The notes under the pieces were generated by a model that saw only the letters and a list, made by a program, of their open reading frames with translations, was not told the origin of the DNA and ran no database searches. This document shows, piece after piece, positions 25,742 through 37,139 of a stretch of 64,000 bases of DNA (its first letter is position 1; every line of letters begins with the position of its first letter). The stretch lies in the sequence record NC_048792.1; one strand, given 5' to 3'. The translations under genes and the position numbers were made by a program.

Positions 25742-27574
25742 ATGAGTCTGTCTGACCAAAACGTTAACGAAGCTAAAAACACCCAACGCGCTGCAGCTGC
25801 ACAGGGTCAACAACCTCGCGAACAAGCAGGCCGTCGTCTGAACACCAACATCTTCGAAAGCGGCCAACTGGTACAAGCCGGCGTTTCCGGTAACGAACTG
25901 ACCACTTTCATCGAGCGCTTCAACGCTTATCACGACGCAAACAAAGCTGCTCTGTCCGCCGGCGGTCAACTGACCTGGGCCGTAATCCCAGCATCTTCTG
26001 GCGAAACCAAAATGAAGCTGGATGCAGCTGTCGTTGTCGGTAAAGCCACTACCTCCGAAGGCGTGATCACCACTGCACTGACTCTGCTGTTCACCGGCGG
26101 CCAGCCTCTGCCGAAGCAAGTCGTAGAGATCAGCAACCGTAACGAGCGTCAGTACTCTGCCGTCGCGAACGATCAGTTCACCGAAGCGTATCAGAAAAAG
26201 CTGACCGAAATCATCAACCGCAAAGCTCCTTACATGGGCGAAGCTGAAAACATCGTTCTGATGGGCGCCGTGGCAGTAACCAACGCGCAACTGAGCGAAG
26301 CGAAGTGTGAAGACCTGATCATCTCCGCGGTGAACTCCGTCTTCGGTTACCTGGGCAACATGCTGCGTACCGAACACTTCTCTCTGACCGATGCGATCGA
26401 CTCTCAGCGCAGCGAGTTCGTTTCTCGCGTGATCTACAATCAGGGCGATGCCCATGACGAAATCACCGAGCGTCCTCGTCGTCGCGATCTGGCCGTCGAA
26501 GTATCTCTGGCAACCAAAGGTCAGCGTAACCGTGTGTCTAACGCACTGGAAAACGCTGAAGGCGCAATGGACATCGCAACCATCGAAGGTTACGTTGATC
26601 TGCTGTTCCTGGGTCGTCCGGATGGTCAGCAACGTCGTTCTCGCTACCGTTCTCAGCGTGAAGAAGACGCAGCGCGTCAGATCTACGGTAAAAACCTGGT
26701 CATCACCCACATGAAGCACGAAGCTTCTCCTGAGCACCTGTGCCTGGCACTGGCCCAGATCCCTGTACTGATCAACGAAAACGTTCTGACCACTGGCCTG
26801 AAGCCAGCCGGCGACAACGCGAAACTGCGTACTCCGGTTGCTCTGACCTACGAGCTGGACGAAGAGTTCGAAGCAGTGCCGGACGTTCTGGACGATGCAG
26901 AGTGGGCTGACCTGACCGACGTAGTGATCCAACCGGATCAGAACTTCGTAACCGTACTGATCGACGAAACCGGCATCACCACCCAACAGCAGAAACTGCT
27001 GCTGCAAGCGACCGACCGCATGAACCCGAACCGCGACCTGTTCGCAGACATGCTGGTACAAGCGGCTGATAACCTGACCAAAGGCGCCTTCATGGAAAGC
27101 CTGGGCGCAGCGCGTATCAACCCGCTGGATATCGGCGAACGTCAAGACCGTATCGTCCTGCTGGGCGAATGGACTGACGACCGTGGCCAAATCCGTTCTC
27201 TGACCGAAATCGACTACTACGCGATCCTGACTGCCTTCGGCCAGAAAGATCGTCGCATCGTAGAAGACTGGGATCGTTGCCAGAACGATGTAAGCCTGCC
27301 GATCGAAATCCGTCTGGCGAAAATGGAAGAGATCATCGACCAATTCACCGGCGGTTCCTATCGCATCACCGGTCACGGTGTTCCAGTACTGGTTAACACC
27401 CAGTGGCTGTTCACTCTGACCAACGCCGCCGAGCGCGCTGGTATGGTTACTCAGGCTGACGGTATCTATCAGGATACTCGTTTCCGTCGTGGTTTCCAAT
27501 CTCAGTACGCTACTTCCGGTTACGCCGGCAAAGCGTTCCGTATGCGTGGTACTGGTCGCAACGATTACTTCTAA
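25742..27574 (+). CDS. chmA: Chimallin, the phage nuclear shell protein
   Basis: About 610 aa with extreme high-expression codon bias. Lies directly upstream of the nvRNAP beta-prime N-terminal subunit, matching phiKZ gp54-gp55 order. AAGGAG RBS before 25742. Confidence 0.85.
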   Translation: MSLSDQNVNEAKNTQRAAAAQGQQPREQAGRRLNTNIFESGQLVQAGVSGNELTTFIERFNAYHDANKAALSAGGQLTWAVIPASSGETKMKLDAAVVVGKATTSEGVITTALTLLFTGGQPLPKQVVEISNRNERQYSAVANDQFTEAYQKKLTEIINRKAPYMGEAENIVLMGAVAVTNAQLSEAKCEDLIISAVNSVFGYLGNMLRTEHFSLTDAIDSQRSEFVSRVIYNQGDAHDEITERPRRRDLAVEVSLATKGQRNRVSNALENAEGAMDIATIEGYVDLLFLGRPDGQQRRSRYRSQREEDAARQIYGKNLVITHMKHEASPEHLCLALAQIPVLINENVLTTGLKPAGDNAKLRTPVALTYELDEEFEAVPDVLDDAEWADLTDVVIQPDQNFVTVLIDETGITTQQQKLLLQATDRMNPNRDLFADMLVQAADNLTKGAFMESLGAARINPLDIGERQDRIVLLGEWTDDRGQIRSLTEIDYYAILTAFGQKDRRIVEDWDRCQNDVSLPIEIRLAKMEEIIDQFTGGSYRITGHGVPVLVNTQWLFTLTNAAERAGMVTQADGIYQDTRFRRGFQSQYATSGYAGKAFRMRGTGRNDYF

Positions 27575-29830: not shown

Positions 29831-30226
29831 ATGGCAACTGTACATGCCTCTTTAAACGGGTACGGTTACACCAAAGACCCAACTATCATTGCCGATGAGT
29901 TATTCGGCGAGAGCATCTATAGCAGGCGCTCTCAGACCGAGATCTACTTCGGGAAGATCGTCTCCTTGGACGACATGATTCGACAATTCAGCGATCGACC
30001 TACTGAGCTTTGTAAGGAGTTGGAAGATCAATACACTGAGTTGTTTGGTCGTCACTTTGTGGACGTACGGGTTCAGGCTACTTCCGAGGAACCTGAAGGT
30101 AAAGACGCTTTCAACGTAGTGTTAAAAATTAGATATCTGCGAGATGGTATACGGTACGACTTCGCGCGTGTCATCGAGCACTACGATGGCGTCGTTAAAG
30201 AGATTACAAGGATACTTGACAAATGA
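29831..30226 (+). CDS. Conserved hypothetical protein, possibly gp25/gpW-like
   Basis: 131 aa, AGGAG RBS. The fold guess is weak. Confidence 0.5.
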   Translation: MATVHASLNGYGYTKDPTIIADELFGESIYSRRSQTEIYFGKIVSLDDMIRQFSDRPTELCKELEDQYTELFGRHFVDVRVQATSEEPEGKDAFNVVLKIRYLRDGIRYDFARVIEHYDGVVKEITRILDK

Positions 30227-30786
30227 CCGATCTCACCCCTCCAATTCCTCAGGAAGATACTAGCTTCCTGGATGCGATCTTAGACTGGAGCGAAGCCTCC
30301 ATCGGATCCATCGATAAAGAAACCTTTGCTCGTACCTGGCTCCCTGCCTTGACCAGCGAAGATAAAGTTATTCGTGAAAACGCCTGGCGTGCTTGGGAAG
30401 CTGACGTTGCTAAAAGCTTCTCCTTGCCGGTCTATGTTACCGAAGACGGCGAACGTAAGTGGTTAGTTCCCCCTGTCATTGGTACCATTAACTCGGGTTA
30501 CACTGCCAACCCGATGTCAGTAAATACTCAGAACCAGATGGTAGCAACTATGCGTAACCGTCTGCTCGCCAACGGCGACATTGCCCAGGACAAAATGTTC
30601 GAGGGTATCGCCAATGCAGATGGCACTGCCGCAGATATCAATAAGTTCTATCAGCTGAACTGGTTTGTTATTCTCCGTGACTTCGGTCACCTGAAAGATG
30701 AATCTGGAAAGGCGGTTGCTGCTACTAATGTAGACGCGGCTAATGGTACTGATGATGTCTACGAAGAAGGCGAGTATGATTTCTGA
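30223..30786 (+). CDS. Conserved hypothetical protein
   Basis: 187 aa, ATGA overlap. Confidence 0.7.
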   Translation: MTDLTPPIPQEDTSFLDAILDWSEASIGSIDKETFARTWLPALTSEDKVIRENAWRAWEADVAKSFSLPVYVTEDGERKWLVPPVIGTINSGYTANPMSVNTQNQMVATMRNRLLANGDIAQDKMFEGIANADGTAADINKFYQLNWFVILRDFGHLKDESGKAVAATNVDAANGTDDVYEEGEYDF

Positions 30787-31900
30787 CGAAAAAGGCCTGC
30801 GTATTGGGCTCGTCAGTGATGTTCACTTTTTCCATAAACGGACTCGGTCGCCACGTATGTTGGCGGCCATCCGTCGTCTATTTCCGGATAATGACGAAAC
30901 GGGAGAATTAGACATCATTGCGATTACCGGTGACTGGACAGATCACTTGGTATCGTTAGATGATCCCGATGTATATTTCGCCCAGGAAGCGGCGATTTAT
31001 TTGATGCGCCTCTGCGCCAAACGGGACATTGATCTTATCGTCCTGGAAGGTACCAAATCCCATGACCGAAACCAAAACATCATGTTCGATAAATTGAACA
31101 AGATACTGGAATTAGGTTGTAACGTTATCTACCGAGACACGCTGTGTATTGAGTATCTGGAAAAGCACGGGATTAACATTCTGTTCTTACCTGATGAATG
31201 GTCGCCTAATGCTGAGGTTACTCTGCAACAGGCCAAAGACTTGATTCACTCTCGTGGCTTGGCAAAAGTTGACTTTGTCTTTATGCATGGCGGATTCACT
31301 TACCAATTACCCGGCATCCCATCTCCAGCGTTGCACGACGCAGTAGCATGGAGTGAGTTAGTTGAGTATGCGGTATTTAGTGGGCACATCCACACTCACT
31401 CTCGTTATCTTAACGTCATGTCTGTAGGCTCTCTGGAGCGACTTGGGCACGGCGAAGAAGAAAACAAGGGCGTAGTCTACATGACCTATGCAAATGGGCG
31501 TGAGGCTGACTATGTGCGTAAAATCAACCATGATGCTAGGATTTACCGTACTCTTGATGTTCAGGGTATGGAGATCAATGACGTCTTACAGATTATTGAT
31601 TCAGAGGGGCCGTGGGAACCCGGTTCTGCGATTCGTCTTCTGTTCGATCCTGAAGATCCTAAGATGGCTATAATGGAGGCGGTAAAAGCAATATACGGAG
31701 ATATTGAGTTTACTGAGAAAGTCAACGGTAAGAAGTTAAAAACAATGCATCGTGGTACTGCGTTTGTCCAGCAGAAATACGTAGCTACGCCGATTACTCG
31801 TGCAAACGTATCTTCTCTTTTAGAGAAACGTTGGTCTGATCGCGGTACTGATTCAGCAACCATCGAAGAACATCTTGATTTGGTAAGGGGACTTTTGTGA
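30776..31900 (+). CDS. SbcD/Mre11-like metallophosphoesterase nuclease
   Basis: SDVHF, TGDWTD, EGTKSHD, MHGGF and SGHIH motifs. Confidence 0.85.
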   Translation: MISDEKGLRIGLVSDVHFFHKRTRSPRMLAAIRRLFPDNDETGELDIIAITGDWTDHLVSLDDPDVYFAQEAAIYLMRLCAKRDIDLIVLEGTKSHDRNQNIMFDKLNKILELGCNVIYRDTLCIEYLEKHGINILFLPDEWSPNAEVTLQQAKDLIHSRGLAKVDFVFMHGGFTYQLPGIPSPALHDAVAWSELVEYAVFSGHIHTHSRYLNVMSVGSLERLGHGEEENKGVVYMTYANGREADYVRKINHDARIYRTLDVQGMEINDVLQIIDSEGPWEPGSAIRLLFDPEDPKMAIMEAVKAIYGDIEFTEKVNGKKLKTMHRGTAFVQQKYVATPITRANVSSLLEKRWSDRGTDSATIEEHLDLVRGLL

Positions 31901-32301
31901 AGGCAATTGTTAGAAACTCAATGGAGGTCACCGTAGACAATACGGTGCCTTATATCCTACTTTTGGTTTTGTCGCCTGTATTGGGACTTATCGCTAAGGT
32001 AACGTTCTGGTCGTTTTACGGCGGCTCCAGTATTTTGATCTTCGGGGCAGGTGTTGGGTTAATCGTTCACTGGTGTTCGTGGGTGATGACTAACACTACT
32101 GAAAACGACGGTATCCCTGGCTGGTTAGCTGGGGTAATGTCTTACCTGGCTGTCAGTATTGGTTTTGTTCTGATCAACTGGGGACTCCACCTTATCGACT
32201 ACAGAGTACGAGTTGATACAGCTAACGCATCTATCGTCTGTCTGTTAGCGGCATCTGCCGTACCGTTGATTCGCTTATGGTTCGATAAACGAAAAGGGTA
32301 A
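31897..32301 (+). CDS. Small multi-pass membrane protein
   Basis: About four hydrophobic segments. Confidence 0.65.
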   Translation: MKAIVRNSMEVTVDNTVPYILLLVLSPVLGLIAKVTFWSFYGGSSILIFGAGVGLIVHWCSWVMTNTTENDGIPGWLAGVMSYLAVSIGFVLINWGLHLIDYRVRVDTANASIVCLLAASAVPLIRLWFDKRKG

Positions 32302-32304
32302 GTT

Positions 32305-33129
32305 ATGAACGCATACGACGTCCTTTCTCAGCGGGCTGTCGGCGAACTTCCGATTTCTATAGGCACGGCTCTAGCTCTTGAGGGGCTAGAGAAAAACATT
32401 AGCGCTGGTGATTCTGGTAATCAGCGCTATGGTGCTTTGTGGATTAACATTCGCACGCTGTACCGTAACATCTACGAATCGGTGGAGAATATCCGCCGAC
32501 CTTTATTAACGCCAAAAGCAATTGCGGATACATTGATCGAAGAAGTTCAGTATATTCGTCGTTTTGCTAGCGGTAAGATTGATCACGTTCAGTTGTACCA
32601 CCGTGAGTACGCAGATCTACTTCGTCGGTTCCCGAAAGCGTATATTAAGGTTCCTAATACCCCGTTGCAAAAACAATACGATGCGTTCATGAACAAGACA
32701 CTGGACATTGTCATTGCTCGTGATGTCGACCAAAGTATTGAATGGGATAAGGGATCGATATTGCGCGGTGAGCCTACCAAAGCGTTGATCATTACTCACT
32801 ACCCGGTTGACTTACTTTCTCGTACCAAGTTCACTCAGCTACGTTTGCTGGAGTCGTACACGGCTGCGATTAAGTCTAAGTCGCAATGGAACACGAAGTT
32901 GACGGAAGGTAAGAACCTCAAGAACATGCCTTTCAACGATTTCACTATTCAGGTGTTTGGCGATGGCCCGACGCAGTTCTTGCGTATGCCAATTGCAATT
33001 CGCCGAGCGGTTATCGATTGTGCAATTAAGTACAAATGGACACCGATGACTACCACTGAAAAGATCCGTCAGAACATCCAATGGATACCTGACAAATCGA
33101 TCGTGGAGCTACTCAGAGAGGCCCTCTAG
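32305..33129 (+). CDS. Conserved chimallivirus hypothetical protein (possibly a degenerate PIN/FEN-like fold)
   Basis: 274 aa. LWINIRTLYRN resembles the first PIN strand and helix with Asp replaced by Asn. Confidence 0.55.
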   Translation: MNAYDVLSQRAVGELPISIGTALALEGLEKNISAGDSGNQRYGALWINIRTLYRNIYESVENIRRPLLTPKAIADTLIEEVQYIRRFASGKIDHVQLYHREYADLLRRFPKAYIKVPNTPLQKQYDAFMNKTLDIVIARDVDQSIEWDKGSILRGEPTKALIITHYPVDLLSRTKFTQLRLLESYTAAIKSKSQWNTKLTEGKNLKNMPFNDFTIQVFGDGPTQFLRMPIAIRRAVIDCAIKYKWTPMTTTEKIRQNIQWIPDKSIVELLREAL

Positions 33130-33206
33130 TAGTATTTTACGCCGGCTCTAGTGATATGAGCCAACTTACAAATTTATCTTCAAACCGAATATTAAGGGTT
33201 TACCAA

Positions 33207-33992
33207 ATGGCAGAACAAAAGTCTTATAGCCTGGGTCGTCGCGAACGTGCACTCGATGATTGGGCATGTCGCCTGTTTGCTCCGGCTACTCAAAACAGCG
33301 ATGGTAAAGAACCATTCCTGTTTATTGATTTCCGCTACAATCATCAGGATAAAGTTCGCGATATCCAGATGGGTGTAAACCTGCGCAAAGGCGGTAAAGA
33401 CGGTAAGATCGACTTCTTCCCTAACCTGGTTCAGTTCAACGCGCTGTGCGAAGCTATCCGCATGGTAGCTAACGACCAGATCCCTGACGGTATGGTCAAA
33501 ATGGAAGTCATGACTACGTTCATGTTCGGTAAGAAACTGGATCGTCCAGAAACCGAATTCATGATCGTGGTCGGGAAAGACCAGGAAGGTGTATTCATCG
33601 GGATCACTCAGAAAGGCCGCGATAACGTGAAGTTCTACTTCACCGGTCCGCGCATGACCGTTCTGCGCAACCGTGCAGGTGAAGTGTTCGATAACTCGGT
33701 CACCAGCAAAATCTTCGCAATCGCTCGTGCGAACATGTGGGAAAGCCACATCAACTATCTGATGCAAAGCGCATACCTGGACGCTCCTGAACTGGAGCAA
33801 GCAAAGGAAGCGAAGAAACGCGCCAACCAAGCACGCTTCAGCCAGAACCAAGGTCGCCAGGGCGGCGGCGGAAATTCATGGGGCGGAAATGGTGGTGGTA
33901 ACGGCGGCGGCAATAGCTGGGGCGGCGGTCAGCAACAGCAACAATCTGCTCCTCCAGCCGATGGCGGCTTCGATAACGACATTCCGTGGTAA
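33207..33992 (+). CDS. chmC: Probable ChmC-like nucleic-acid-binding protein with a Gly/Asn/Gln-rich tail
   Basis: Lies immediately upstream of the gp68-like subunit and has a low-complexity G/N/Q tail. Assignment is by synteny from memory. Confidence 0.6.
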   Translation: MAEQKSYSLGRRERALDDWACRLFAPATQNSDGKEPFLFIDFRYNHQDKVRDIQMGVNLRKGGKDGKIDFFPNLVQFNALCEAIRMVANDQIPDGMVKMEVMTTFMFGKKLDRPETEFMIVVGKDQEGVFIGITQKGRDNVKFYFTGPRMTVLRNRAGEVFDNSVTSKIFAIARANMWESHINYLMQSAYLDAPELEQAKEAKKRANQARFSQNQGRQGGGGNSWGGNGGGNGGGNSWGGGQQQQQSAPPADGGFDNDIPW

Positions 33993-34049
33993 TACGGTAA
34001 AGCTGCTGAGGGCAAGTAGCCCTCAGCAGTCTCTACTATTTTTCACGTA

Positions 34050-34095: not shown

Positions 34096-35613
34096 ATGGA
34101 AATCTATTTTGATCCGGAAATCGACGAGAAACAAAAGCTCGTTTTGATGGGACATCCCGGAGAAGAGCCGTTGGTCTGGGACATGCGTTATTACAAGAAG
34201 GTAAACGCGGAAATGTTTCGGGACATCAACGATTTCTGGCGGTGGCGTCCAGAAGAAGAGCAGGCTGCGATCTTCCAGGCGTTCAGGAATATCCGCGATG
34301 TGCTCGGTGTAGTATTCGATCCAAACGTCCTGTTCAGTATCATCAACAAGGAAGTCATTAAGATCGCGAAGTATCATCCGATCGACCTGGTTGATCACTG
34401 GGTAAGAACGCGTTCTCAGATTCGTTTTCCAGATAACCTGAAAGACGAAATGGATGAGCGTGACCGACCTGAGCAAACGTATCTGCGTGACGACTATCGT
34501 CAGCTGACGTCTCTGTCGGTAATCCTGAAGTTCATGTTGCCGATCTGGTCTGAGTATACCATGCTCAAACTGGGGTTGCGTGAGAACCAGCAGGAAGTAG
34601 TATCCATGGCGTTGCTGCAACGTAGTGGTATTGAAGAGAGTGCTCCATTCCAGCGGTTCCGCGTATTCGTGGATTATATCGCATCGGATAACGATCCGGG
34701 CATGAGAAACATTCTCGAAGGTATCGGGACGTTGGACATGCCGGAGTGGATCTTCAGTCTGATGATGGTAGAACGACTGGCAGCTGCGGTAGTGTCTCAC
34801 AACGACGATGCGAACAAAGAGCAAACAGTTAACCTGATCTCTACGCTCTGGGCACAAACTCGGGCTAAACTGAGCCCTGACCAGAACCGTAAGAAAGGAG
34901 ATGTTCGTCCTAAGACGTTTACGTCGGCGAACGGTAGCGAAGAAGACAACTCGTCTACAGCGGAAAGTTATAAGCCCAAGGAACGTATCAGTGATGGTAC
35001 TCGAATTGAGTTCGACTATTCTGCAGCAGATGCGGCGTTGATGGGTCGTCGGTTGATGAACGATATCGATCTGGATCTGTTGAAACGACTGGTTCGTCGT
35101 AACTCGCTCCGTAAGTATTTCAACCCGACCGAAGAGCAAGTTAAGTTAACGGCACTGACGTTAGCGAAAATTAACCCGACTCGTGCAATGCCTCACACCG
35201 ATCGTACCGGTGCGATTAACATGTTGTCGGTAGCTCAGACCTATCTGCATCAGAAAGGGTTCTCTACTCTGGCTGATCTGTTAGGTGCAAGTCGCGGTGA
35301 GCCGTGTAATACGATCTCTGGTAGCGAGCAGATCAAAGATCACCACAAAACTATACTGGCAACCATCTATCCATATCGTCGCCAAGTAAAAGCGGGTACT
35401 GGCTCTAAGACGGTATTGAAAGATCCGGGCACAATTGCCATTGAAACATTAACAAGTAAATTCGCAGGCTATTATTGGTATCGTGATACCGATGACGTCA
35501 TTGCGGAAAGCTCCAAGATGGTTATTCGGGAAGGCGGTATGGTTATCCCTAGCGATATCCGACTGATCCTGGCTGACTTCATCATTGCATTAAACGGCCC
35601 AACTGGCCTGTAA
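34096..35613 (+). CDS. Non-virion RNAP promoter-specificity subunit (phiKZ gp68-like)
   Basis: 505 aa helical protein at the expected syntenic position, with its own early promoter. Confidence 0.7.
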   Translation: MEIYFDPEIDEKQKLVLMGHPGEEPLVWDMRYYKKVNAEMFRDINDFWRWRPEEEQAAIFQAFRNIRDVLGVVFDPNVLFSIINKEVIKIAKYHPIDLVDHWVRTRSQIRFPDNLKDEMDERDRPEQTYLRDDYRQLTSLSVILKFMLPIWSEYTMLKLGLRENQQEVVSMALLQRSGIEESAPFQRFRVFVDYIASDNDPGMRNILEGIGTLDMPEWIFSLMMVERLAAAVVSHNDDANKEQTVNLISTLWAQTRAKLSPDQNRKKGDVRPKTFTSANGSEEDNSSTAESYKPKERISDGTRIEFDYSAADAALMGRRLMNDIDLDLLKRLVRRNSLRKYFNPTEEQVKLTALTLAKINPTRAMPHTDRTGAINMLSVAQTYLHQKGFSTLADLLGASRGEPCNTISGSEQIKDHHKTILATIYPYRRQVKAGTGSKTVLKDPGTIAIETLTSKFAGYYWYRDTDDVIAESSKMVIREGGMVIPSDIRLILADFIIALNGPTGL

Positions 35614-35645: not shown

Positions 35646-37139
35646 ATGAAACCTCAAGTTATCGACGCAATCTTCTTCGAATCTTCTAACTACGATGATC
35701 AGTTCTCTCGTTCTTTCGATACTCACTTCGACGGAGATGTATCGAATGACCTGTTGCGTAACACCAACAACGGTCGTAACTTGTCACCGACTGCATTGTC
35801 CCGTTCTGTGGGTTCTGCGATCACGATGCAATCTCGTCACCGTGGCGAAATCGTAATCCCAGGCGGCTGGGGCGAAAAACGTCTCAGTTTCATCATCACT
35901 GTACTGATCGACGATTATAATGGTCGTAGTCGTCGTCAGGTATTGACTGGCTATACTGACTATAACGGCGTGTCTCGTGTAAGTGGTTCTCTGGATGATG
36001 AGATGTTGCTGTATGTCAACAACTCCACCACTATCGCAGATACCGTGTTCAGCACCGGTCGTGGTAATACTCGTCGTTCTCGTATTGAGAGCAACGATTA
36101 CATCATCCGACCAAACGCGCTGCGTAACGACCGTACTCGTCGTCTGGGCTTTGACGAACCTGAACGTCTGCTTCGTCCAAACGATATCTTCAATAACCGT
36201 TCTATTGCAGAACAAACTCGCTTCCTGGGCGGTAGTGACGAAATCATCGATACTCGTGGCGATCTCGGTAACGAAATCAAACTGGGTCGTCGTACTGATA
36301 ACAATGCGTCCAACTATCTGTCTCGCGTTCTTCGTGCAGGGATCATGGCTGAAACTAACACTCAGCCGGAGTTCAATGTCGAATCTCGTTTTGCGGCAGA
36401 AGAGCTGACTCCAGCAGAACATGCAGCAGCGGCAACTATGCCGAACGATATCGGTTCAAACACACTGTTCATGGAATTCCTGGCCAGCTGTGATTTCGGC
36501 GTAAGTGGTTCCATCACTCTGCGTGAGTTTGCAGACTGCACCGATTGGGATGAGCGTGCAACGCGCTTCATCGATGCCGGCGAAGTGGGTAAACGTGGCT
36601 ATACTGGTTACGAACGTGGTCGTGGTAGCGACTGGAAAGGCTCTGACCGTAAGACCATCGCAGCATCTATCATCGCGCAATCTGTTCCGGCGTTGATGAT
36701 GCAACACTTCATCTCCGATGCTATCATTAAGATCACTAATGATACATTGACTGGTGAAATGAAAGCGCTGGTAGAAGGCCCTCGTGCAATGATCCCAGGT
36801 ATGGACGTAACTCCGTATCTGACTCCGCTGGAAGACCTGCTGGTTCTGCAAGTCGGCGAAGTGGTATCGCACAACAACCAAATGTTGATCGATGTTCAGA
36901 TCGACTGTTCTGTCATCACCGATATCAAAATCACCATCAGCATTGAAGGTGATGAGGACGAAGAGTTCGTAGCTCCGTGCTTCTGTGATGGTTTGACTTC
37001 TCCGATGAAAACTCCTGACTACGATCAGGCAGCTAAGATCGGTAACGATCTGAGTGCAATCATCGACGATGTCGTAGACCAAATGCGTGCTGAAACTGAT
37101 GAGCCAACTCGCGACTACTTCGACCGCGACGGTTATTAA
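35646..37139 (+). CDS. picA: Probable PicA/Imp1 nuclear protein-import factor (phiKZ gp69-like)
   Basis: 497 aa directly after the gp68-like gene. Assignment is by synteny from memory. Confidence 0.6.
   Translation: MKPQVIDAIFFESSNYDDQFSRSFDTHFDGDVSNDLLRNTNNGRNLSPTALSRSVGSAITMQSRHRGEIVIPGGWGEKRLSFIITVLIDDYNGRSRRQVLTGYTDYNGVSRVSGSLDDEMLLYVNNSTTIADTVFSTGRGNTRRSRIESNDYIIRPNALRNDRTRRLGFDEPERLLRPNDIFNNRSIAEQTRFLGGSDEIIDTRGDLGNEIKLGRRTDNNASNYLSRVLRAGIMAETNTQPEFNVESRFAAEELTPAEHAAAATMPNDIGSNTLFMEFLASCDFGVSGSITLREFADCTDWDERATRFIDAGEVGKRGYTGYERGRGSDWKGSDRKTIAASIIAQSVPALMMQHFISDAIIKITNDTLTGEMKALVEGPRAMIPGMDVTPYLTPLEDLLVLQVGEVVSHNNQMLIDVQIDCSVITDIKITISIEGDEDEEFVAPCFCDGLTSPMKTPDYDQAAKIGNDLSAIIDDVVDQMRAETDEPTRDYFDRDGY

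Follow-up and report, generated by a model that had tools for sequence, protein, structure and literature searches.

A C-terminal tail resembling that of bacterial SSB on the Whirly-fold ChmC protein of Serratia phage Moabite

Background

The 64,000-nucleotide stretch of DNA analysed here (the window) comprises bases 1-64000 of Serratia phage Moabite, in the same coordinates as MK994515 / NC_048792, and contains a gene, HWC48_gp048 (gp048), for an ortholog of ChmC, also known as Imp6, a protein that is essential and conserved in nucleus-forming phages. We report that the last ~46 residues of gp048 have the architecture of the tail of SSB, the bacterial protein that binds single-stranded DNA, with a disordered linker rich in Gly, Asn and Gln (G/N/Q) followed by a C-terminal tip of the form F-D-x-D-[ILVM]-P-[FW]-COOH. 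The SSB likeness of the ChmC tail is specific and conserved; the tail sits on a Whirly scaffold instead of the oligonucleotide/oligosaccharide-binding (OB) fold of SSB, and there is evidence that this module has been exchanged between phages and ssb genes. Our preferred explanation, to which we assign a probability of roughly 0.6, is that the tail has the role of its counterpart in SSB, with a condensing linker and a docking and autoregulatory tip, here carried by a Whirly protein. ChmC itself, its fold and the role of its C-terminal region in condensates and localisation were already known; the SSB-type tail on a Whirly-fold phage protein is new here.

The tip would offer a concrete, deletable handle on the connection of ChmC to other machinery. 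The SSB-type tail, which is common in the ChmC family, may connect the protein to its partners and may also mark it as a candidate for the SSB that these phages lack. If the tip is a docking peptide, it would further predict that mRNA export, the import of proteins (Imp1) and the replication of DNA are linked.

Results

Comparison of the gp048 tail with bacterial SSBs

The gene and the parts of its product are the following, where pLDDT is the predicted local distance difference test score of the AlphaFold2 (AF2) model:

33207..33992, + strand: ChmC/Imp6 gene, Moabite HWC48_gp048, 261 amino acids plus stop (GenBank coding sequence, list of open reading frames (ORFs), homologs)
33207..33851, + strand: residues 1-215, a core of the Whirly fold that has two C-terminal helices (AF2 model)
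33852..33965, + strand: disordered G/N/Q-rich linker, residues 216-253, beginning GRQGGGG and including QQSAP (pLDDT, composition)
33966..33989, + strand: acidic-aromatic tip GFDNDIPW, residues 254-261, similar to the C-terminal tip of SSB (SSB-Ct) (sequence)

The protein ends in a G/N/Q-rich run, QQQQQSAPPADG, GFDNDIPW and the stop codon, in this order and exactly as quoted in the preliminary description, which had been made from the letters of the window alone. That description also stated that enterobacterial SSB contains QQSAP and ends in DFDDDIPF. Both hold for E. coli SSB as read from NC_000913, and in a comparison set of 81 gamma-proteobacterial SSBs (the E. coli gene and 80 further SSB genes that we fetched) the C-terminus is DFDDDIPF in 75 cases, S. 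marcescens included. The opening GRQGGG and the QQSAP motif are common to the gp048 and E. coli SSB tails, the compositions of which are also close (G18 Q10 N7 in Moabite; G17 Q11 P10 in E. coli). After its first residue, the Moabite tip is identical to SSB-Ct at five of seven positions (F, D, D, I and P), with Trp in place of the terminal Phe.

When the last 48 residues of gp048 were compared with four SSB tails against composition-preserving shuffles, z-scores of 3.6-6.0 were obtained, with 0-4 of 2000 shuffles scoring as well; the match exceeds chance. For the linker alone, with the last eight residues removed on both sides, the signal fell to z 2.2 (11 of 400 shuffles as good), so that the order-specific likeness of the Moabite tail to SSB lies mostly in the tip. 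The tail resembles, in its composition, its order and its tip, an SSB linker followed by SSB-Ct. At the DNA level, only short collinear exact matches of 17, 15 and 12 nucleotides (nt) to Salmonella ssb were seen, all in G-rich codons, and we have not counted them as evidence of capture by Moabite.

Identity and fold of gp048

The preliminary description had called the protein 'ChmC-position'; by sequence, gene order and fold it is a real ChmC. In a word-indexed phmmer search of 5.8 billion proteins, which returned 82 relatives, gp048 matched PhiPA3 gp61, the protein that defined ChmC, with an E-value of 7e-9, and a hidden Markov model (HMM) built from 81 relatives found PhiPA3 gp61 (1e-95), phiKZ gp67 (6e-85) and Goslar gp176 (2e-50). 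The protein also matches phrog_3284 with an E-value of 1e-63. The block SbcD, gp66, ChmC, gp68 (a non-virion RNA polymerase subunit) and gp69 (Imp1/PicA) has the same order in Moabite, phiKZ, PhiPA3 and Goslar. In the AF2 model, which was computed from an 81-sequence alignment and has a mean pLDDT of 83.6, residues 6-219 are confident, while residues 220-258 have a pLDDT below 50. In the VIA-align comparison of this model, the top 15 rows were all Whirly, MRP or PUR entries (Z 9.7-7.2), among them WHY2 (9.7), PBF-2 (9.1), StWhy2 (8.9), MRP1/2 (7.8) and PURA (7.5), and the matches in BFVD were chimallivirus proteins. Whirly is also the fold published for ChmC in the ChmC paper. Thus by sequence, synteny and fold gp048 is a true ChmC/Imp6 ortholog, and it shares with PhiPA3 gp61, phiKZ gp67 and Goslar gp176 the disordered N/G-rich C-terminus with an acidic end.

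A Pfam search with E-values up to 1 gave no match of gp048 to the bacterial SSB family (PF00436). Because of this, and because the fold is Whirly instead of OB, gp048 is not a member of the SSB family. SSB is a tetramer on single-stranded nucleic acid, as are the ChmC orthologs, and both gp048 and SSB have a disordered Gly/Gln-rich linker and a tip in which Phe occupies position -7 and Asp positions -6 and -4, followed by Ile, Pro and an aromatic last residue. On the other hand, the gp048 core is Whirly where that of SSB is an OB fold, its linker is N-rich and P-poor, its last residue is Trp, and its orthologs prefer RNA.

The best structural matches to gp048 were the plant Whirly proteins (WHY1-3, StWhy2, PBF-2; Z 8.4-9.7), which are tetrameric organelle proteins that bind single-stranded DNA (ssDNA) and whose C-terminal Glu-Trp contacts the DNA-binding domain. 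No sequence similarity to them was detectable: the Pfam Whirly profile PF08536 had no match in gp048, nor in the genome of a close relative at E-values up to 10. The likeness of gp048 to Whirly proteins is structural only. Moreover, the plant proteins have neither a long G/N/Q linker nor a D-I-P-[FW] end.

Conservation of the tip across the ChmC family

For a survey of the family, ChmCs of named phages were added: wherever a gp68 ortholog was present, its upstream neighbour was collected and checked with the family HMM for being a ChmC. This gave 94 distinct sequences in total, and a tip was called canonical if the C-terminus read [DENS][DENSA][ILVM]P[FW]. Such a tip was present in 44 of the 94, and in 92 the last residue is hydrophobic or aromatic; on average the last ten residues contain 3.0 acidic and 0.03 basic ones. 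In a clade of 27 members from enterobacterial phages, the consensus end is F-D-x-D-[ILVM]-P-[FW] (F in 24, D in 27, any residue, D in 25, and [ILVM], P and [WF] in all 27), and it holds while the linker varies from 10 to 44 residues in length and core identity drops to about 35%. Within the Moabite subclade (n=16) the corresponding counts are F 14, D 16, D 16, [IVLM] 16, P 16 and W 16, so the terminal Trp occurs in every member. The tip is kept in relatives whose core identity is only about 35-60%.

Endings that are canonical or near-canonical are found in named phages of many hosts, including Serratia PCH45 (YDEDIPF), Klebsiella Centimanus (DFDNDVPW), Erwinia Ea277G (DFDSDIPF) and RAY (DFADDLPF), Salmonella SA002 (GFDESIPF) and SPLA10 (FDDTLPF), Burkholderia FLC9 (SEDLPF), Ralstonia RP12 (SSDDIPW) and Xanthomonas LucasX (DDDIPM). 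Canonical tips were present in every deep lineage of the core-domain tree, which was obtained with a quick IQ-TREE search and has weak deep nodes. Furthermore, ChmC was the only real gene with an [ILVM]-P-[FW] ending among the 596 ORFs (>=60 amino acids) of the complete 276-kb genome of a close relative. The tip is thus an old family trait in phages of many hosts and not an oddity of Moabite. An alignment of tails across ChmC homologs had been proposed with the preliminary description, and the motif is conserved in it; the idea of a local mimic of the Serratia SSB is not supported.

Moabite and most members from outside the Pseudomonas phages carry the canonical D-[ILVM]-P-[FW], whereas the three ChmCs that have been studied do not. 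In the Pseudomonas-phage clade the tips are derived (IPxF in phiKZ and PhiPA3, LPSFD[FW], VMAF), and the studied proteins phiKZ gp67, PhiPA3 gp61 and Goslar gp176 end in FDDEIPNF, FDEDMPSF and VAFDGLAF, respectively, the last being strongly derived. In the ChmC papers the C-terminus is described as having an 'N/G-rich' region and a cluster that is 'S/D/E-rich' and electronegative; SSB is never mentioned there, and in the full-text literature we found nothing joining Chimalliviridae with SSB, or Whirly and jumbo phage with SSB. The studied ChmCs have the least SSB-like tips, which probably explains the wording of these papers.

Exchange of tail sequence with ssb genes

The likeness to SSB is strongest in a sister lineage of ChmC. 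One of its proteins (P0024) ends in EPPMDFDDAIPF, to be compared with an SSB ending in EPPMDFDDDIPF (z 8.6-10.5), and its linker plus EPPM matches SSB with z 6.6. Over its last 41 nt, the gene matches the 3' ends of several ssb genes at 90% identity; this is suggestive, although the match spans identical amino acids and is the best of 81 genes. Another protein (P0026) runs past IPF with APIGLQY...; with z 13 this matches IPFAYIGLQY..., the end of an SSB variant from a Mixta genome that belongs to the rare extended type. Convergence is hard to invoke here, because the two share an extension that lies beyond the functional tip. These sequences come from metagenomic contigs, the gene neighbourhoods of which resemble chimallivirus loci, and the genes of P0021, P0024 and P0026 have about 70-80% DNA identity and are too diverged for breakpoint mapping.

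We conclude from these alignments that tail sequence has passed between ChmC and ssb genes at least once. The tip had been described beforehand as a convergent or captured SSB-Ct. For the sister lineage, capture from ssb is well supported by the 12-residue ending, the 41-nt match and the extended ending; for Moabite itself, where the linker signal is marginal, capture is possible.

Several further features were seen at the loci with extended endings. On the P0026 contig (L086, 2060-2640), an HNH homing-endonuclease-like ORF with the motif HHDDYNYP...CESCH has been inserted precisely where the ChmC gene stops; the 16 residues by which this ChmC extends past IPF arrive with the HNH insert and resemble the rare extended SSB endings. 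A second extra ORF, of 210 amino acids, lies after the HNH ORF and before the gp68 ortholog. Five of the 81 SSBs extend 16-19 residues past DDDIPF (e.g. ...IPFLGHGYG...AIYAIS), at loci L037, L059, L063, L076 and L084 from Chimaeribacter, Mixta, Scandinavium, Pseudomonas lundensis and Trabulsiella, and such an extension would bury the carboxylate that SSB partners recognise. These five genes may be mobile-element paralogs. No HNH gene was present in the 300-nt downstream flanks of the five loci, and a homing element shared by the ChmC and ssb extensions is therefore not supported.

Discussion

What is known of ChmC orthologs and of similar tails

Bacterial SSB forms condensates that depend on its tail. 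The acidic tails of T4 gp32 and T7 gp2.5, the latter with an essential terminal aromatic residue, recruit the phage replisome and compete with DNA, and the tails of SSB, gp32 and gp2.5 fold back on the DNA-binding surfaces of their own proteins. Both phage proteins, unlike ChmC, have an OB fold, and their families were not found in the close relative of Moabite. Tail-dependent condensates have been published for ChmC as well: PhiPA3 ChmC is a homotetramer that binds single-stranded RNA at 58 nM and ssDNA at 184 nM (ChmC paper), and after deletion of residues 204-251 it keeps the tetramer and RNA binding and loses condensates and localisation to the nuclear shell. ChmC crosslinks to mRNAs in cells, and the shell and the cytoplasm are the main sites of the PhiPA3 protein. 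Proteins that co-purify with Goslar ChmC are the RNase H-clamp protein Rhc, the polymerases (DNA polymerase subunits among them) and PicA, and knockdown of this ChmC leads to small nuclei. The phiKZ ortholog gp67 (Imp6) directly binds the importer Imp1 in a stable complex, and the host proteins that enter the phiKZ nucleus include at least TopA (bioRxiv 10.1101/2024.03.27.586873). In the plant Whirly proteins the C-terminal Glu-Trp touches the DNA-binding face, and mutation of the Trp raises ssDNA binding.

A working model and its alternatives

In the explanation that we prefer, the linker would give reach and drive condensation, and the tip would be a short docking peptide that tethers partners either to the nuclear shell or to nucleic acid coated with ChmC; when unbound, the tip may fold back on the basic nucleic-acid-binding face and restrain binding. 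The docking function and the identity of the partner are inferred. A phage factor that is conserved would be a likelier reader of the tip than host SSB partners alone, and candidates are Imp1/PicA, the RNase H-clamp protein with DNA polymerase, the flap-nuclease-like neighbour and ChmA, with host SSB-binding enzymes also possible. A phage-encoded reader is favoured because the host SSB-Ct is nearly invariant while the tips of ChmC vary between clades and are fixed thereafter, and because ChmC that has lost its tail is no longer on the shell, the site of phage proteins. The fixed Trp of the Moabite clade and the drifted tips of Pseudomonas phages argue weakly for such a reader or for an autoregulatory role. 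Several points weigh against this model as a whole. The ChmCs of Vibrio phage Yong XC31 and Klebsiella phage Eowyn have no canonical tip and that of Goslar is strongly derived, so the tip is dispensable or replaceable in some lineages. The published deletion of residues 204-251 takes linker and tip together and therefore does not separate the tip from the condensate-forming linker. If the FLAG tag of the Imp1 pull-down was C-terminal, on which the text is ambiguous, then Imp1 binding needs no free C-terminus (bioRxiv 10.1101/2024.03.27.586873). Finally, only two of six nucleic-acid-binding residues of PhiPA3 ChmC are identical in Moabite, in an alignment of ~26% identity that may be shifted, so that binding of RNA and ssDNA by gp048 is presumed from its ortholog.

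The tip might instead copy SSB-Ct in order that ChmC bind the host's SSB-interacting enzymes (among them ExoI, RecQ, RecJ, PriA, Pol III chi, RNase HI and Topo III), which would be sequestered, brought to the shell or passed to Imp1. In favour of such mimicry, the tip shares F, D, D, I and P with SSB-Ct and likewise closes with an aromatic residue; ChmC is made early and in abundance and occurs both in the cytoplasm and on the nuclear shell. The best support for mimicry is the sister lineage, with the near-exact host-type 12-mer EPPMDFDDAIPF and DNA-level identity to ssb. TopA is not known as a partner of SSB-Ct, which counts against this idea. The binding of ChmC/Imp6 to Imp1 and the entry of TopA into the phiKZ nucleus (bioRxiv 10.1101/2024.03.27.586873) speak for it. 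The drift of ChmC tips by clade (fixed Trp; IPxF, LPSFDW, VMAF) opposite an almost invariant host SSB-Ct fits co-evolution with a phage reader better, and we judge mimicry of the host an unlikely account of the tip; a trap for host enzymes is one of several live options for the function of the tail, and recognition by host enzymes and by a phage reader are not mutually exclusive. It has also to be considered that the acidic end has no specific partner at all and, as an 'electronegative cluster', only shields the basic RNA-binding face and tunes condensates, the SSB-Ct likeness being convergent physics with occasional recombination. This is the reading of the acidic end in the ChmC paper itself, and it agrees with the restraint of ssDNA binding by the plant Glu-Trp and with the variety of acidic-aromatic endings tolerated across clades. 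The folding back of the SSB, gp32 and gp2.5 tails described above speaks for it too. However, D-[ILVM]-P-[FW]-COOH is invariant within clades while the linker varies, which is more constraint than charge shielding needs, and a role in docking is suggested by the fact that ChmC leaves the shell when its C-terminal region is deleted; autoregulation or solubility alone is thus improbable in our view.

A further proposal is that ChmC is the equivalent of the replicative SSB, a Whirly tetramer that would coat ssDNA at the fork as well as mRNA, and the tip of which would organise replisome and repair enzymes in the nucleus. The complete 276-kb genome of the close relative contains no match to OB-fold SSB (PF00436), T4 gp32 (PF08804) or gp2.5-type proteins (PF10991), an SSB with the classic OB fold is listed for group 2 but not for the phiKZ group in a survey that compared jumbo phages, and the known replication proteins of the family listed in a 2026 preprint include no SSB. 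The ssDNA binding of PhiPA3 ChmC at 184 nM, the SbcD-like and flap-nuclease-like genes adjoining the ChmC gene, the co-purification with Rhc and DNA polymerase subunits and the small nuclei upon knockdown all point in the same direction. On the other side, RNA is bound about three times more tightly than ssDNA, the crosslinks in cells are to mRNA, the PhiPA3 protein is mainly on the shell and in the cytoplasm, and the lack of a Pfam match is still compatible with a divergent SSB elsewhere in the genome. The proposal is therefore possible but doubtful. The same tentative standing is given to its fullest form, in which ChmC would be the missing SSB, coating nascent mRNA and fork ssDNA within and at the nucleus, with a real SSB tail that repeated recombination keeps ssb-like, organising the polymerase/RNase H-clamp, nucleases and the Imp1 gate and possibly hijacking host SSB partners. 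Lastly, a low-complexity, glycine-rich tail could end like SSB by accident; Pfam gave only a sub-threshold match to 'glycine rich protein', and phmmer of the tail, a low-complexity query, against PDB sequences returned only Gly-Ser antibody linkers. Such a coincidence is contradicted by the shuffle tests, the family-wide conservation of the tip and its uniqueness within the genome, and we consider it extremely improbable.

One other protein of the window was considered as an alternative SSB:

30223-30786, + strand: gp044, 187 amino acids, directly upstream of the SbcD-like gene, with an acidic tail and terminal Phe (...DDVYEEGEYDF)

Among the ORFs of the window, only gp044 and ChmC have an acidic tail with such an ending. 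A search of the 5.8 billion proteins returned two homologs of gp044, one of them ending in ...GDYDI, and there was no match to Pfam or another family, so we do not regard it as a conserved candidate.

Gene start and neighbourhood

The ORF at the gp048 locus spans 33156..33992 (+ strand), with its stop codon at 33990-33992. As the GenBank coding sequence, the ribosome-binding site at 33196-33199 (GenBank record) and the N-termini of homologs, which also begin at the Met of 33207, agree on a start at 33207, gp048 is unlikely to begin at the in-frame ATG of 33156. The surrounding features are:

25742..27574, + strand: gp040, nuclear shell protein (chimallin, ChmA; record annotation)
30776..31900, + strand: gp045, SbcD-like nuclease in the conserved block upstream of ChmC (phrog_100, E 2.5e-57; record annotation)
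31897-32301, + strand: gp046, small hydrophobic membrane-like protein between the SbcD-like gene and the gp66 ortholog
32305..33129, + strand: gp047, ortholog of Goslar gp177 and phiKZ gp66 (BLASTP E 2e-39 to Goslar gp177)
33996..34037, + strand: hairpin just 3' of the gp048 stop (RNA fold -27.8 kcal/mol, z -6.1; GenBank terminator 34003-34032)
34096..35613, + strand: gp049, non-virion RNA polymerase subunit, orthologous to PHIKZ068, PhiPA3 gp062 and Goslar gp175 (tblastn)
35646..37139, + strand: gp050, ortholog of Imp1/PicA, PHIKZ069 (BLASTP E 3e-47 to PHIKZ069)

The presence of gp040 (ChmA) marks Moabite as a nucleus-forming phage. A Pfam search gave no match for gp047; proteins of the Goslar gp177 / phiKZ gp66 type are described as related to T4 RNase H and flap endonucleases (preprint PMC13648698). 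The tblastn search with gp049 gave matches across 95% of its length in 153 phage records, phiKZ, PhiPA3 and Goslar among them. For gp046, the position of which has no counterpart gene in phiKZ or PhiPA3, Pfam gives only weak, sub-threshold matches to transmembrane families. The hairpin after the ChmC gene is very stable but was missed by a simple terminator scan because its T run stands ~ten bases back from the stem, and the other annotated terminators of the Moabite record may have the same T-run spacing.

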